Shown here one piece after another: positions 40,019 to 45,541 of a stretch of DNA of 64,000 nt. Origin of the DNA: Epithemia pelagica (taxonomy: Eukaryota; Protista; Bacillariophyta); the NCBI GenBank assembly GCA_946965045.2, contig OX337233.1, forward strand, positions 1,178,001 to 1,242,000, written 5' to 3'. A model generated the notes under the pieces. That model made no database searches, was not told the origin of the DNA, and saw nothing but the letters and a program-made list of their open reading frames with translations. Numbering within the stretch: position 1 is the first letter of the stretch; each line of letters opens with the position of its first letter. A program made the translations under genes and the position numbers.

Positions 40019-41875
40019 ATGGCTCGAAGCATAGTCTCCTTGCTGTTTGCGATCCAGCTGTTCTTCCAAGGATGCCCTGGTGTTTTGTGCAGACTATTGG
40101 ACTTTCTTGATGATTTTGGTGCTATTCCATTTGATGAGTCCAAGGAAGCATGTCAACACATCTCGGACCTCCTAGCTCGAATCCTCTAACACAACGCATC
40201 GAACAATGTTCTACGAGTTCCATTCAACCAAACGTTTTATCTACATCATGGAATCGCCGCTCAGGCGGTCAACAATAGCGTGATACAACTGGACGGAACC
40301 ATTCGGTTTCAGCGTATTGATTTTCCGGACGATCCGCACCACGCATGCTTGAAGATCACAAGGACACGTAACTTTACCCTAACGAGTAATTATCGCGGAC
40401 TCATCGACGGGCAGGGATCGCAGGTACGTTGCATTTTGCTTTCGAAGCTGAAGCTTGACAACCACCATCTCCTCACTATTGCGCTGCCTTTATCAGTATT
40501 GGGGAGTGCCTGGGGTTGGCTATTTATGTCGAGGGGAGCATCGTCCTCGATTGTTACGATTCGACCTCACGGAAGACCTGCTCATTGAGAACATTATTCT
40601 TCAAGACTCCCCATACCACACCCTTTACCTTGACGCTGTGAACCATGTCGAGATTCGCAACATTAGCATCGTTGCACGTCGCACTAACAAGGACAAGCAC
40701 AGGTATATTGATATGACTGCGTTCAATACTGATGGAATTGATGCTGCTGGGAGCAATGTTTGGATTCATGGTAAGTTTTTGCACCATGATGTTAGATGAA
40801 CGGATACCTGAGCACTCACGTGGTTGGATTCGTATGTCCAGACTGCGACATTTGGGTCCAAGACGATTGCATTGCGGTCAAGGACGTAAAAAAGCATGAA
40901 GGTATCGAATTCAATCCAGTTTCCTCAAATATGGTTTTTGAACGAATCAACGCATCAGGTCTTGGACTTACCATTGGTTCGATTCAAGGTACTCATGTCA
41001 AAAACATCACATTTAGGGATAGCTACTTGTATCGAACTATGAAAGGTATCTATATGAAGTTTGTAAAACCGAAGCACGAGTACCTGGAACGTGGTGTTGG
41101 TGCCAAGGTGTAGGACATTTTGTATGAAAACATTGCCATGGAAGAACCGGCCCAGTGGGCCATATGGATTGGACCAGCACAACAGGCGGACTCTGGTGAT
41201 CCGTGTCACGCCAATCCCTGCAGTTTGTGCTGGCCCTGGTTGAAAGGATCAGAATGCAATGTTGTTGCAAACGACAAGTTTCGTGACATTACGCTTCGCA
41301 ATGTACGAATAAACAATCCTCAAGGATCAGTTGGTTTGATCTATGGAAATCAATCTGAAACCATTGATAATGTCGTCTTTGATAATGTTCAGGTTACCAA
41401 AGGAGACCCTCTACCGATATCCAAAATCGACATCCATGAAACCTTTCCTGGAACTCGTCAACCGGTTCGTGATTTTTGGGTCTCTTCCGATTGGACCAAT
41501 TTGGAACTAAAGCAGAAAGAAGATGAGCTTCATGGTCATTTGAAAAAAGCAGGTCTTGGAGCAACCGCACCGAAGAAAATGCATATAAATTGGCTTGAAA
41601 TCTTGAAGGAAATCGTTTGTAGTGAGCTGGATCCCTCGTTTAAGGAGGTACGCAAGACGGGAGGCATACTCGATGGAATAAGAAGCACATTATTTGGAGC
41701 AACTCTGCTCCCCCATCAAAAGCCTGAATGGCTAAAGGCTGATCGCTATTATGTGTGCCAAGGCGTGAAGAACGGAGTAGCAAAAGGGAACACGTCTCCT
41801 GTCCCAGATTGCTTTGAGAAAGAAGAGGAGCGGTCTGCAAGGACGAACAAGAAGACAGCCTACAAAGAACTATAG
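40019..41875 (+). pseudogene. Glycoside hydrolase family 28 (polygalacturonase-like) with two premature stops; introns 40424-40496 and 40771-40841
   Basis: Signal peptide; DFGAIP, IDGQG, QDSPY, NTDGID, QDDCIAVK, GLTIGS. In-frame TAA at 40187-40189 and TAG at 41111-41113. Confidence 0.8.
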
Positions 41876-42385
41876 GGATTGGGAAGCCGACACATGTTAT
41901 TACTTCTAGTTCAGCAATATCTGGTCTTGCTAGGCCTTGGCTTTTCCTATTAGTGAAATCGATACCATGTTGTGTAATGTCTAGTAGGATCAGCATGGCC
42001 GTACGCAGCCCAAAAGAGAGCGCCCAGCATACTACTTTCTGTGGAGCCAGTGCTAGGGGTCGTCAACAATGGATAGCTCCACATAATGGCGCATCCATTC
42101 TCAGTTTCAGGCCAGCAATTCTTTGTTACTCAATCTTTGCGTACCACCGAAGCATATTTTCCAAACAGGTACGCGGGGAGGAACGAGTGCCTTGAATCTC
42201 AAGAGTGTCAGTTCTCTTGCTACTGTGGCTCATGTGGGTTTGTGAATTGCTGTCAACTTCGAATCGTGTGAGACTGCGTGCAAATTCAGTGACAGCATCA
42301 TAGCGTGGACCCTGTCATGATTGCTTGTCAATTCCCAAGTAGGACTTTCGTGACAAAGCTTGTTACCAGGAGTCTACCAGTAGTG

Positions 42386-44020
42386 TCACTGGTTGGACGG
42401 TAAGCAGTCTTTGGGCAGCTGTACCGTAAACACTCCTGGTTGTCCCTTGGGCAATGAAAAGGACTTGGCCAACCAGGTTGGATTCGAAATCTCGGTGCAA
42501 TATTGTCCAATCCCTTCACCGCGAGCCAAGACTTGACGATGCAAATTGGGATCTGTCGCCCGTTCTTGGTAGGACACTTGTCGGGTGGGACCCAGGGTGA
42601 CCATTCCCACCACATGTCCCTTTGAGAATCCACGAGGCAATCGTGTCCATTGTGGAATATCTTGACTGTCCTTGGCCAAAATATCGCGAAAGGTCTCTTG
42701 ATCAGGCCAGTCACGACGACCACAAGCCACCAAGATCTTGGTACCCACCGGCAAGTCTTGAAAGAGGGGTTGTTTCCGAGACTCGACCGTCTTGACTCCG
42801 TTCAACAAAAGAGAACAAAATGGCTGACTCATGGAAAAGCAAGGCATGTCCACAGTTTCTGTTGTTCTTGGTTGGCGCTTATCGTCCCCTGCTGCTTCAT
42901 TGACAAAAGCGTCTAGAGTCGCCGACCATCGACCCGGTCGACGCCTGTCTTCCGATAAGGTAAATGTCACCAGGTGTCCCGCCTGAAGTGTTCCTTGCAT
43001 CTCTGCCGGAACTTGCGATTCATGAAAGAAATACTCATCCTGTACCGCATTGTCATTGTCAATGACAAACCCAAACCCCTTCTTGGGTGAAAAGAATTTG
43101 ATCCTACCCATCATTACAGTGCCCTCGGGCGGCGAAGAGGATGTCTGTGACCCTGCCTTTCGTGCTCCACTCGATGCACTTGGTGAGATATCCAAATTCT
43201 TGCTGTCCAGGACATATCCCATCCAGTGCCGTGCATCCTTGCCTGCCTTTAGGTCACTGTATTTTTGCAGGGCCTTGACAAAATGTTCCATGGTCATGCC
43301 TCGTGGTGTATGACAACACAAGACTCCCAACTGACTAATCTCCTTCAAGTTCATGGACACATTGTCATCGAAAAACAGCATTTCAGTGTAGGCAAATCCT
43401 GTGGCCTGTTTCAAATGAGCAAAATGTTCTTTCTTGCTCCCTTTTTGAATTTCCACCAAGTTGGATCCAAACAAGGATTGGATCGGAATCCGCTCGTTCG
43501 AATCTGTCGTTACCACAAAGTCTTGAAGCAACTGGTGCGCCCATCGCGTACGAGTGGTGCGACTGGCAATGGCCAACTTCATATCATCGCCCGTCGATGG
43601 CGCGGCGGCAAAGAATTCGAGAATGCGTCGGGCATCGTCAAAGAGACAAATGTCCCGATCGGCCTGTGGCATTCCACCCTGACGTTGGTTGGGTATTCGA
43701 AGTTGATACAATTCCGGTGTCCACAACGTATTGTCCAAGTCAAAAACGAGTAACTTGGGGAGAACTTCAAGTTGAGACAAAAAATCTGTATCCAAAACAA
43801 AAGTCTGGTCTTGGTTTGTTGTTGTTGTTGTCGTCGACATGCCGAGAGTAGACGAACGCTTGAAATGACTCGATTGGGGAAGAGATTTTGGAGCGTTGCG
43901 ATCCAACCGTTGTGCAACCGGAGACATCCATGCAGCAGAGGGTACACACAGACATGCCAACAGGAATTGGAGTAGCAGCACGTAGCCCGCAGCAAACACC
44001 TTGCCGCTCAACCATGCCAT
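42386..44020 (-). CDS. Predicted plastid-targeted fusion: MDP-1-type HAD phosphatase + cold-shock domain + ASCH domain
   Basis: Signal peptide ending SAA-W plus a S/T/R-rich transit-like segment; FDLDNTLW/ASRT/K/FFDD; GRIKFFSPKKGFGFV..YFFHES; SMSQPFCSLLLNGVKTVESR. Confidence 0.85.
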   Translation of the reverse strand: MAWLSGKVFAAGYVLLLQFLLACLCVPSAAWMSPVAQRLDRNAPKSLPQSSHFKRSSTLGMSTTTTTTNQDQTFVLDTDFLSQLEVLPKLLVFDLDNTLWTPELYQLRIPNQRQGGMPQADRDICLFDDARRILEFFAAAPSTGDDMKLAIASRTTRTRWAHQLLQDFVVTTDSNERIPIQSLFGSNLVEIQKGSKKEHFAHLKQATGFAYTEMLFFDDNVSMNLKEISQLGVLCCHTPRGMTMEHFVKALQKYSDLKAGKDARHWMGYVLDSKNLDISPSASSGARKAGSQTSSSPPEGTVMMGRIKFFSPKKGFGFVIDNDNAVQDEYFFHESQVPAEMQGTLQAGHLVTFTLSEDRRRPGRWSATLDAFVNEAAGDDKRQPRTTETVDMPCFSMSQPFCSLLLNGVKTVESRKQPLFQDLPVGTKILVACGRRDWPDQETFRDILAKDSQDIPQWTRLPRGFSKGHVVGMVTLGPTRQVSYQERATDPNLHRQVLARGEGIGQYCTEISNPTWLAKSFSLPKGQPGVFTVQLPKDCLPSNQ

Positions 44021-44614
44021 GGTTTTTAACAGAGTCTTCTTCCAATTTTGCTGAGCAAATGGGTGGCGAGGTCAACTTACGTAGTACGTACGTTCATAAG
44101 AACGACTTAAGCACGACCTCACGCGACCGAATAAGTCTTTTTCTTCCCCGGGCCGCAAAAGCCACCTTGCATGCGCGCTGAAAGCAAGCCGATCCTCGCT
44201 CCTCGTCGGCACGAAAAGAGCGGCGTTTGCGTTTTGCCGTTCTCATGTTTTTCATCTCGTACCTCTGTTTTTGTCCACAAGTTTCCGGTCGGTTTTCCAA
44301 AGACCCGTTTCGTTTCGCGTCAGCTGACCTGTGAAGCGAACATGGTTCGGTTGCGGCAAACGCACCAACAATCAACCTCTCTCGTGGCTCCCACAGCAGC
44401 AGCAGCAGCAGCATTTGGTTTCTTGGTCTCATTCCTTTTCGGTTCCTACCAATCAAAAAGGAGTGAGTGGATTGAAACACTGACAACACAGTATCTCCTC
44501 TTACGCTTTGGCTTCTATCTGGCATCTGGACGAGTGGTCAATACTTGTTTATTCCGTTCTTATTCTCTCTGGACTTAGAAGAAGAAGACAGGGTTCTACC
44601 AAACAAACACCAAG

Positions 44615-45541
44615 ATGCAACGACCACTCACATGGAACACGTCCCCGCTGTCTTTGTCGTCTTCACCCACACAAGAGCGAATGGCAGTCTCCTCACCACC
44701 TCATGAGTATCAAGTCGATCATGGTTTCATTGATCTGTCGTTTGCTTCACCACCAACACCATTGAATTTCGTGAACCAAGTATCGGACGATGACGACAAT
44801 GACGACAATGAAGCACACGACGATGCCGTGATTGACAAGAGCATTCTTCTATCCGAAGATGATGACCACTTTTGCCGCTCGCCCCTTCAAGAGATTTCGC
44901 TGTCCTCCTCCAGTGACGAGGAGGATGATGATTCTATTGTGACGGACGAGGAGTCGTTGCCCTCCTCTCCCCAACCACGGCCTTACTTTACCATTATCAC
45001 TCCTCCCCGCTATCCGAGATTTGGACATCTCAATACTCGCCCCTACCGACCCTCTATTGCCTACCAACGTGCACGGCTCTATCCCATTCCCGAAATGGTC
45101 GAAGATGAAGAAGACCAGCAAGTTTCGAGGCCGACCAATGCTGTACCTGAGCAACATGGACCTCTCAATGCTCCAATATCGTCAACAGTGTCCTCTCCTC
45201 CCTCTCTGCAGTTTCCAAAACTTCAACTTTGGGGGCCACAATCTCCCATTGCCTGTGTGACACCGCCAAAAGAAAAAGCAGAGATGTATTCAATCCCGGG
45301 ACGGAGCAAACCTTCAAAAACTAAAACATTTCAAGAACCTACTCTCTTCTGCGACGCATCAAGTTTCTTGTCGAGTGCGACTGATGGTATGTTCTCGAAA
45401 CATGAGACAAACTCCCCATTGTCAGTACTGACAAATGCAAGAAAACCAAAGAAATGGGGCGACGAGAAGAGTGGGAGTGGCAATCATTCTTTTTCGCGGA
45501 ATGATTCTCGACTGAGATCCATGCCGACATTCACCGGCTGA
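44615..45541 (+). CDS. Hypothetical acidic, Ser/Pro-rich disordered protein
   Basis: 308-aa ATG ORF with diatom-like composition; no recognised domain. Confidence 0.5.
   Translation: MQRPLTWNTSPLSLSSSPTQERMAVSSPPHEYQVDHGFIDLSFASPPTPLNFVNQVSDDDDNDDNEAHDDAVIDKSILLSEDDDHFCRSPLQEISLSSSSDEEDDDSIVTDEESLPSSPQPRPYFTIITPPRYPRFGHLNTRPYRPSIAYQRARLYPIPEMVEDEEDQQVSRPTNAVPEQHGPLNAPISSTVSSPPSLQFPKLQLWGPQSPIACVTPPKEKAEMYSIPGRSKPSKTKTFQEPTLFCDASSFLSSATDGMFSKHETNSPLSVLTNARKPKKWGDEKSGSGNHSFSRNDSRLRSMPTFTG

Follow-up and report, generated by a model that had tools for sequence, protein, structure and literature searches.

Phosphatases of the MDP-1 type (magnesium-dependent phosphatase 1) are capless members of the HAD superfamily, with an open active site that suits bulky or macromolecular substrates. 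As found in animals, plants, and fungi, MDP-1 stands alone, with a length of ~165 amino acid residues, and it reportedly acts on sugar phosphates, phosphotyrosine, and protein-bound fructosamine-6-phosphate. To our knowledge, no convincing physiological role has emerged for it in 25 years. Cold-shock domains (CSDs) bind single-stranded nucleic acid and melt its secondary structure. Here we describe a gene of the diatom Epithemia pelagica in which a predicted MDP-1-type phosphatase, a CSD, and an EOLA1-type ASCH domain are joined in a single open reading frame (ORF). The gene lies at 42386..44020 on the (-) strand of a 64,000-nt stretch of E. pelagica DNA (the window; all coordinates are positions within it).

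The closest described relative of the third domain, EOLA1, belongs with EOLA2 (CXorf40A/B; PDB 5y7d, 6kir, 9kyi) to the TRIP4-like ASCH clade. Not until 2026 was EOLA1 tied to N4-acetylcytidine (ac4C), and the available accounts disagree about its activity, substrate, and location. In two preprints, K21, E24, and R26 form the catalytic pocket of EOLA1, with S7 pointing inward (Relier et al. 2026; Statkeviciute et al. 2026). Human EOLA1 hydrolyzed the free ac4C nucleotide and ac4C in unstructured RNA, whereas ac4C in hairpins and in cellular rRNA and tRNA was refractory; a role in cytidine salvage was argued, since N4-acetylation blocks cytidine deaminase (Relier et al. 2026). Statkeviciute et al. 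(2026) observed that 19 ASCH proteins, including EOLA1, lower tRNA ac4C, and that many ASCH proteins, again including EOLA1, also remove ac4C at the nucleoside level.

The locus lies in the nuclear genome of this raphid pennate diatom. The coding sequence consists of 544 codons and a TGA stop in one exon, with no intron and no internal stop. An in-frame stop is located 17 codons 5′ of the ATG, so the N-terminus cannot be extended without an intron. A protein of 100% identity (P0001) is annotated on a 2-Mb ENA contig, and the ENA product of the gene, which has 537 residues, starts at a GTG seven codons downstream of the ATG. No second copy of the gene was found within the window by blastn and tblastn. 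A word-indexed protein search returned 157 relatives of similar length; the counts given below refer to the 120 that were listed, and residue conservation was read from the alignment of these 120 sequences. Residues 78–544 were modeled with AlphaFold2 from a 98-sequence alignment.

The MDP-1-type domain comprises residues 87–255 (43256..43762, (-)) and was recognized by Pfam, NCBIfam, profile, and fold. The Pfam family Acid_PPase/MDP-1 (PF12689) matched this segment with E 4.6e-40 and 137.7 bits (cut-off 27), and the NCBIfam equivalog TIGR01685 (MDP-1) scored 68.7 bits (cut-off 53.75). A profile of the family's HAD domains matched human MDP-1 (2wm8) with E 5.7e-30 over positions 2–165 of 167 and mouse MDP-1 with E 3.5e-28, whereas the next HAD protein reached only 2e-3. 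All four HAD motifs were intact: DLDNT with D94 (codon 43739-43741), D96 (43733-43735), and T98; S153 (43562-43564); K196 (43433-43435); and D218-D219 (43364-43369), all encoded on the (-) strand. Each of these residues was kept in at least 114 of the 116–119 homologs aligned at its position. In the model, the domain is a capless Rossmann-like core with a predicted local distance difference test score (pLDDT) above 90 and no inserted cap. Foldseek superposed it on 1u7o with a template modeling (TM) score of 0.85 and on 2wm8 with 0.77; an MDP-1 structure among the matches carries the title "hypothetical phosphotyrosine phosphatase." Both sequence and model place the N-terminal enzyme module in the MDP-1 family (HAD subfamily IIIC), and phosphatase activity is predicted for it. 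It resembles MDP-1 (2wm8, 1u7o/1u7p) in its end-to-end alignment, its four motifs, and the missing cap, but differs in being the N-terminal module of a 544-residue fusion with a predicted plastid destination.

The C-terminal domain (residues 391–542, 42395..42850, (-)) was assigned to the EOLA1-type ASCH (PUA-like) fold by sequence, profile, and fold comparison. The last 160 residues gave no Pfam match even at E 10, and the Pfam ASCH family (PF04266) grazes some of the homologs below threshold. The domain aligned end to end with the sequences of the mouse and human EOLA1/CXorf40 crystal structures (E ~2e-16) at only about 27–31% identity, whereas TRIP4/ASC-1 reached only E ~0.5 in this single-sequence comparison. 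With a profile of the family's ASCH domains, EOLA1 was matched over its whole length (E 2.5e-30) and TRIP4 over 23 residues of the octapeptide region only (E 6e-3); YqfB was detected by neither sequence nor profile search with the ASCH domain. The modeled domain gave TM scores of 0.83 and 0.82 to 6kir and 5y7d, ~0.62 to TRIP4, and ~0.56 to ZmASCH (Foldseek). The octapeptide G-V-K-T-V-E-S-R contains K410 (42791-42793), E413 (42782-42784), and R415 (42776-42778), kept in 119/119 homologs, and the putative pocket residue S396 (42833-42835) is Ser or Thr in 120/120; the four codons lie on the (-) strand. These residues are equivalent to K21, E24, R26, and S7 of EOLA1, respectively.

Sequence and model thus agree in placing the C-terminal domain closer to EOLA1 than to other ASCH clades, and deacetylase activity is predicted for it. 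It shares with EOLA1 the end-to-end alignment, the intact G-K-E-R octapeptide, and the match to S7. EOLA1, however, is a standalone protein of ~158 residues, reported as cytosolic or mitochondrial, whereas the diatom domain forms the C-terminal third part of a putatively plastid-directed fusion. E. coli YqfB and other small ASCH ac4C amidohydrolases have the PUA-like ASCH fold and the proposed hydrolysis of ac4C in common with it, but in their octapeptide Thr replaces Glu (G-K-T-R), and they are without RNA-binding activity. TRIP4/ASC-1 belongs to the same ASCH clade (GKER), and its ASCH domain is likewise fused to nucleic-acid-binding modules; its partner, in contrast, is a zinc finger, and its roles are nuclear and in ribosome quality control.

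The two enzyme modules are separated by the CSD (residues 303–370, 42911..43114, (-)). The Pfam CSD family (PF00313) matched residues 303–362 with E 1.1e-8 and 35.2 bits (cut-off 27), and the RNP1 motif KKGFGFV (K314, F316, G317, F318) and the RNP2 motif YFFHE (F331, H333) were both present. F318 is found in 120/120 homologs, F331 in 118/120, and H333 in 116/120, while position 316 is either Phe or Tyr. The CSD part of the model gave TM scores of 0.79–0.83 to CspA and Bc-Csp and of ~0.8 to CspB (Foldseek). With an OB barrel in the model and both RNP motifs in the sequence, residues 303–370 are classified as a cold-shock domain with predicted RNA binding. The CSD is connected to the HAD domain by the partly disordered linker 1 (residues 256–302, 43115..43255, (-); pLDDT <50 at residues 285–293) and to the ASCH domain by the disordered linker 2 (residues 371–390, 42851..42910, (-); pLDDT <50 at residues 376–384). 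The mean pLDDT of the model was 90.1 and the predicted TM score (pTM) 0.57. Together with the two disordered segments, these values describe, at the level of the model, three confident, independently folded domains on flexible tethers. Such a layout fits work on a shared flexible substrate.

The HAD and ASCH domains occurred in the same order in 119/120 listed homologs. A CSD between them was identified in 94 by strict phmmer with the query's own domains, and in more by precomputed Pfam annotation. Nearly invariant positions of the alignment were D94, D96, T98, S153, K196, D218, and D219 in the HAD domain, K314, F316, G317, F318, F331, and H333 in the CSD, and K410, E413, and R415 in the ASCH domain. 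Because 119/120 homologs keep HAD and ASCH with the CSD between them, the alignment argues that the fusion is under selection. Several members are MMETSP transcripts flagged "type:complete," including a 516-residue Entomoneis transcript. They carry all three domains, so that in other species these are transcribed together.

Among the listed homologs, P0033 alone (466 residues, on a 941-kb ENA contig) had HAD and CSD and lacked ASCH. This is probably not a true two-domain form but a model cut short by an intron or a frameshift. When the ASCH domain alone was compared with the word-indexed protein database, three short proteins were retrieved (P0121–P0123), one of them with a partial CSD. Probably they are pieces of this fusion; because the search relies on shared 5-mers, it would miss metazoan EOLA1 and is not informative on standalone forms. 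Six variants were seen in the coding sequence in other samples, one synonymous and five residue-changing, and the catalytic residues were untouched. H202N and D391E each introduce the residue that is commonest in the respective family column, P312A lies in a family-variable column, Q72K lies in the presequence, and H349D was also seen; this variant sample is too small for a selection test.

Diatom plastid proteins are imported with a bipartite presequence, in which a signal peptide for the endoplasmic reticulum is followed by F, W, Y, or L at position +1 of the cleavage site and by a hydroxylated, acid-poor transit peptide. The motif at the cleavage site is known as ASAFAP, and proteins with an aromatic residue at +1 are sent to the stroma. 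An in-house heuristic placed a signal peptide at residues 1–30 (43931..44020, (-)), with a basic n-region, a hydrophobic core, and the ending ...VPSAA before W31. The transit-peptide-like region at residues 31–77 (43790..43930, (-)) starts with W31, is Ser/Thr-rich and acid-poor, and has a poly-Thr run within it. The succession of VPSAA, W31, and the Ser/Thr-rich stretch is the signature of a stromal protein, and the protein is accordingly predicted to be directed to the stroma.

This pattern is not restricted to E. pelagica. Of the 75 family models in which HAD motif I is preceded by 45 residues or more, 51 had a small residue and then F or W after the hydrophobic region, compared with 5.9% of shuffled N-termini. 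The next 25 residues contained, family-wide, 19% S and 12% T (31% together) and 2.5% D+E. A looser presequence heuristic matched leucines within the hydrophobic core and had a shuffle background of 19%; it was replaced by this stricter test. A conserved internal Met after the presequence, which could have served as the start of a cytosolic isoform, was rejected as a candidate, with Met in 35/54 sequences versus ~30 expected by chance (not significant). Green-algal members carry an extension of ~60–95 residues that is basic and hydroxylated and contains neither acidic residues nor a signal peptide, as would be expected for a primary plastid, or for a mitochondrion.

The fusion family was found only in photosynthetic lineages. 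Its named diatom members come from Epithemia, Entomoneis, Amphora, Fistulifera, Mayamaea, Attheya, Cylindrotheca, and Pseudo-nitzschia, its named haptophyte member from Prymnesium parvum, and a prasinophyte green alga, Cymbomonas tetramitiformis (P0125, KAK3284440.1), was identified via a cluster mate. The architecture was confirmed by Pfam for the proteins from green algae and haptophytes, with all three domains in the green-algal P0125 and P0129, and the ESM Atlas holds two clusters, one consisting mainly of diatom and the other mainly of haptophyte sequences. Four well-supported clades, namely diatom A, green-algal, diatom B, and haptophyte, were resolved in a maximum-likelihood tree of 36 members. 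Clade A contains the query, placed beside Epithemia with support 99/94, and P0002; clade B, with P0068 and P0098, contains Pseudo-nitzschia and Cylindrotheca. The green-algal clade is supported at 100/100. The haptophyte group, with moderate support on its own (81/91), joins diatom clade B (99/96) and not clade A. The two deep diatom clades could reflect ancient paralogy, differential loss, or gene transfer. Because green algae have the three-domain architecture with a simple transit-peptide-like extension, the fusion either predates, or passed through, the secondary endosymbioses. A search of 185,579 prokaryotic genomes for bacterial or archaeal ASCH relatives (pattern and tblastn, ASCH profile) gave 31 pattern matches, 0 of which were confirmed; a bacterial origin or an operon context is thus unsupported.

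An earlier sequence-only reading of this DNA had proposed one uninterrupted ORF encoding a bipartite presequence, an MDP-1 HAD domain with all motifs, a CSD with RNP motifs, and an EOLA1/CXorf40-like ASCH domain. These assignments agree with the results described above, and the coordinates and residue ranges were right to within a few residues. The same reading would have abandoned the fusion if transcripts had split the domains into separate genes, and the complete MMETSP transcripts hold all three. Its suggestion to look for the architecture in stramenopiles and bacteria was too narrow in one respect, as haptophytes and a prasinophyte green alga also carry the fusion.

For E. pelagica itself, no run is on record as RNA. 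Run X4, of unrecorded type and with low depth over the gene, was treated as RNA-like because a GT..AG joint skips 71 nt in the neighboring GH28-like gene at depth 867. Over the fusion gene, the X4 depth was 4–18, the neighboring joint being ~100 times deeper. The X4 contigs tile 41974-43542 without a splice, which includes the ASCH domain, the CSD, and the C-terminal half of the HAD domain; there is a coverage gap at 43543-43811, and the contigs carry no strand or transcript-end information. They lend partial support only to a single transcript. The contigs of four runs were collinear with the locus.

A separate observation concerns contigs of X1, X2, and X4 that match up to 43817 and 42548 and then diverge by >255 nt. 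The breakpoint at 43817 adjoins the (GTT)n tract encoding the poly-Thr run and is therefore a low-complexity cross-match. The breakpoint at 42548 falls inside the ASCH domain.

Starting from the observed domain identities, intact catalytic residues, family-wide fusion, and plastid-type presequence, we tentatively propose, at a little short of an even chance, that the protein is a plastid clean-up and salvage enzyme for N4-acetylated (more generally N4-acylated) cytidine in plastid RNA turnover. The localization, the substrates, the order of the steps, and the role of the CSD are inferred as follows. In the plastid, the CSD would bind single-stranded RNA or decay fragments and keep the RNA unfolded. 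The ASCH domain would flip out the exposed modified cytosine and hydrolyze its N4-acyl group by means of K410, E413, R415, and S396. The capless HAD domain would remove phosphate from the same substrate stream, either the terminal phosphate of a fragment or that of a mononucleotide. Ordinary cytidine or cytidine monophosphate, and not the modified nucleotide, would then re-enter the pool. Because EOLA1 is inactive on structured RNA, a fused RNA-melting CSD would give access that standalone EOLA1 lacks. An RNA role of this kind (bind, dephosphorylate, deacylate) had been suggested by the sequence-only reading; the 2026 preprints on EOLA1 as an ac4C deacetylase have given it better ground, and it is still conjectural.

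A comparable combination occurs in the bacterial PUA-Calcineurin-CE + HAD anti-phage system, where a PUA/ASCH-clan domain for a modified mononucleotide from nucleic-acid degradation is paired with a HAD phosphatase acting on nucleotides. In contrast to the algal fusion, the HAD of that system is a capped C1 enzyme with a gene of its own, the PUA domain senses and does not hydrolyze, and the system serves defense rather than salvage; the two systems are not homologous at the family level. The pseudouridine-5′-phosphatase HDHD1/PUDP is a HAD precedent for dephosphorylating a modified nucleoside monophosphate from RNA turnover, but it belongs to a different, capped HAD subfamily and is not fused to a base-processing enzyme.

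Several points weigh against the salvage proposal, whose weakest link is the substrate. Neither nucleotides nor RNA ends are known to us as substrates of MDP-1. In green plastids, C34 of tRNA-Met is unmodified, and the sole report of plastid ac4C concerns a rice chloroplast lysate. The activity of EOLA1 is itself disputed: Statkeviciute et al. (2026) note an earlier structural study with no activity for mouse EOLA1, and another group described EOLA1 as a translation factor in the mitochondrial matrix, bound to 12S rRNA and TUFM (EF-Tu) (Shi et al. 2026). Furthermore, no characterized member of the fusion family was found, plastid targeting is predicted by a home-made heuristic only, and the RNA evidence in the organism is thin, consisting of one low-depth run with 43543-43811 uncovered.

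The same three domains could also act on intact plastid RNAs, as an eraser combined with end-healing. The CSD would recruit tRNA, rRNA, or mRNA, the ASCH domain would remove ac4C in a regulated manner (e.g., under cold or light stress), and the HAD domain would remove 3′-phosphates in the manner of polynucleotide kinase-type enzymes. The open site of capless MDP-1 is suited to macromolecules, the RNA-binding residues of the CSD are conserved, and the lowering of tRNA ac4C by 19 ASCH proteins, EOLA1 among them, points in the same direction (Statkeviciute et al. 2026). On the other hand, cellular rRNA and tRNA ac4C were refractory to EOLA1 (Relier et al. 2026), no ac4C site is known in plastid tRNA, and the sequence does not tell polymer from monomer substrates. 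We consider this explanation unlikely. It is improbable that the protein acts instead as an organellar translation factor which, like mammalian EOLA1, binds the small-subunit rRNA (here that of the plastid) and aids elongation, with catalysis being secondary. Such a role would be in line with the organellar presequence, with the added RNA-binding CSD, and with the association of EOLA1 with 12S rRNA and EF-Tu in the mitochondrial matrix (Shi et al. 2026). However, both catalytic centers are near-perfectly conserved across four deep clades, which argues for an enzyme, and the phosphatase would be left without an obvious role.

The stroma is alkaline and rich in sugar phosphates and acetyl-CoA, and the fusion might repair non-enzymatic amine adducts that form there by glycation or acetylation of RNA bases, nucleotides, or proteins. 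The MDP-1 domain would then dephosphorylate phosphorylated Amadori-type adducts, the ASCH domain would remove the N4-acyl group of cytosine, and the CSD would bring the RNA. MDP-1 is said to be a protein-fructosamine-6-phosphatase, both catalytic domains act on modified amines or the groups attached to them, and the protein is predicted to enter the plastid; yet the idea is purely speculative, no glycated-RNA repair enzyme of such a type being known, and we judge it quite improbable. Self-regulation, in which the HAD domain dephosphorylates the pocket serine S396 and thereby switches the deacetylase, is more improbable still. A phosphoprotein activity is reported for MDP-1 (and appears in the structure title mentioned above), the S7 counterpart in EOLA1 is ~44% phosphorylated, which was proposed to tune catalysis, and position 396 is S or T throughout the alignment (120/120). 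A permanently tethered phosphatase, however, would keep the site dephosphorylated and make a poor switch, and the CSD would be left unexplained. Finally, a read-through of adjacent genes or a chimeric assembly, in favor of which nothing was found, is effectively refuted by the single stop-free ORF, by the same domain order in 119/120 homologs from many genomes and transcriptomes, and by the collinear contigs of four runs.

The family is catalogued but unstudied. Its members are named "magnesium-dependent phosphatase 1," "CSD domain-containing protein," or "hypothetical protein" in databases, and Relier et al. (2026) mention, in one sentence, ASCH domains fused with an S1-like domain and a HAD phosphatase. 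The literature searched held no paper pairing MDP1 with EOLA1, magnesium-dependent phosphatase with diatoms, or the three domains with one another. The sequence-only reading had known of no characterized protein with this architecture; this still holds, but the architecture is that of a large conserved family (157 matches). Four aspects appear to be new: the HAD partner is specifically MDP-1, the members carry a plastid presequence, the family ranges over green, haptophyte, and diatom algae, and the fusion implies that MDP-1 and EOLA1 belong to one pathway.

The last of these aspects invites a "Rosetta stone" interpretation, which is possible but doubtful. According to it, MDP-1 and EOLA1, which in animals, plants, and fungi are standalone and poorly understood, would catalyze successive steps of a single conserved pathway for disposing of N4-acetylcytidine (or other N4-acylated cytidine) nucleotides from RNA. 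If so, MDP-1 would act physiologically on a modified nucleotide or a phosphorylated RNA end and not on glycated protein, a dedicated, RNA-tethered form of the pathway would operate in algal plastids, and N4-acylcytidine in plastid RNA would come from an unrecognized source, enzymatic or non-enzymatic. The fusion across at least four deep algal clades, with catalytic residues intact, is strong comparative evidence for cooperation of MDP-1 and EOLA1 on RNA-derived substrates. It leads to the prediction that MDP-1, working before or after EOLA1, should dephosphorylate ac4C nucleotides or RNA ends, and it points to an unexplored side of RNA metabolism in the plastids of diatoms and haptophytes, both of them major primary producers in the sea.

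The fusion gene is flanked downstream by a convergent GH28-like gene and upstream by a divergent gene for an acidic low-complexity protein. The GH28-like gene is located at 40500-41972 (+), where the piece 40796-41110 matched PF00295 with E 3.9e-7; its 71-nt GT..AG intron (40770-40840) is the one spliced out in the X4 contig at depth 867. The upstream ORF (44615-45541, (+)) encodes 308 residues of Ser/Pro-rich, low-complexity sequence for which no Pfam match was obtained, and X4 contigs cover 44426-45327 at a depth of ~6. Between this gene and the fusion gene lies a divergent intergenic/promoter region of ~600 bp, in which a contig of run X2, from a different sample, showed a cluster of dense substitutions and small deletions at 44240-44265.

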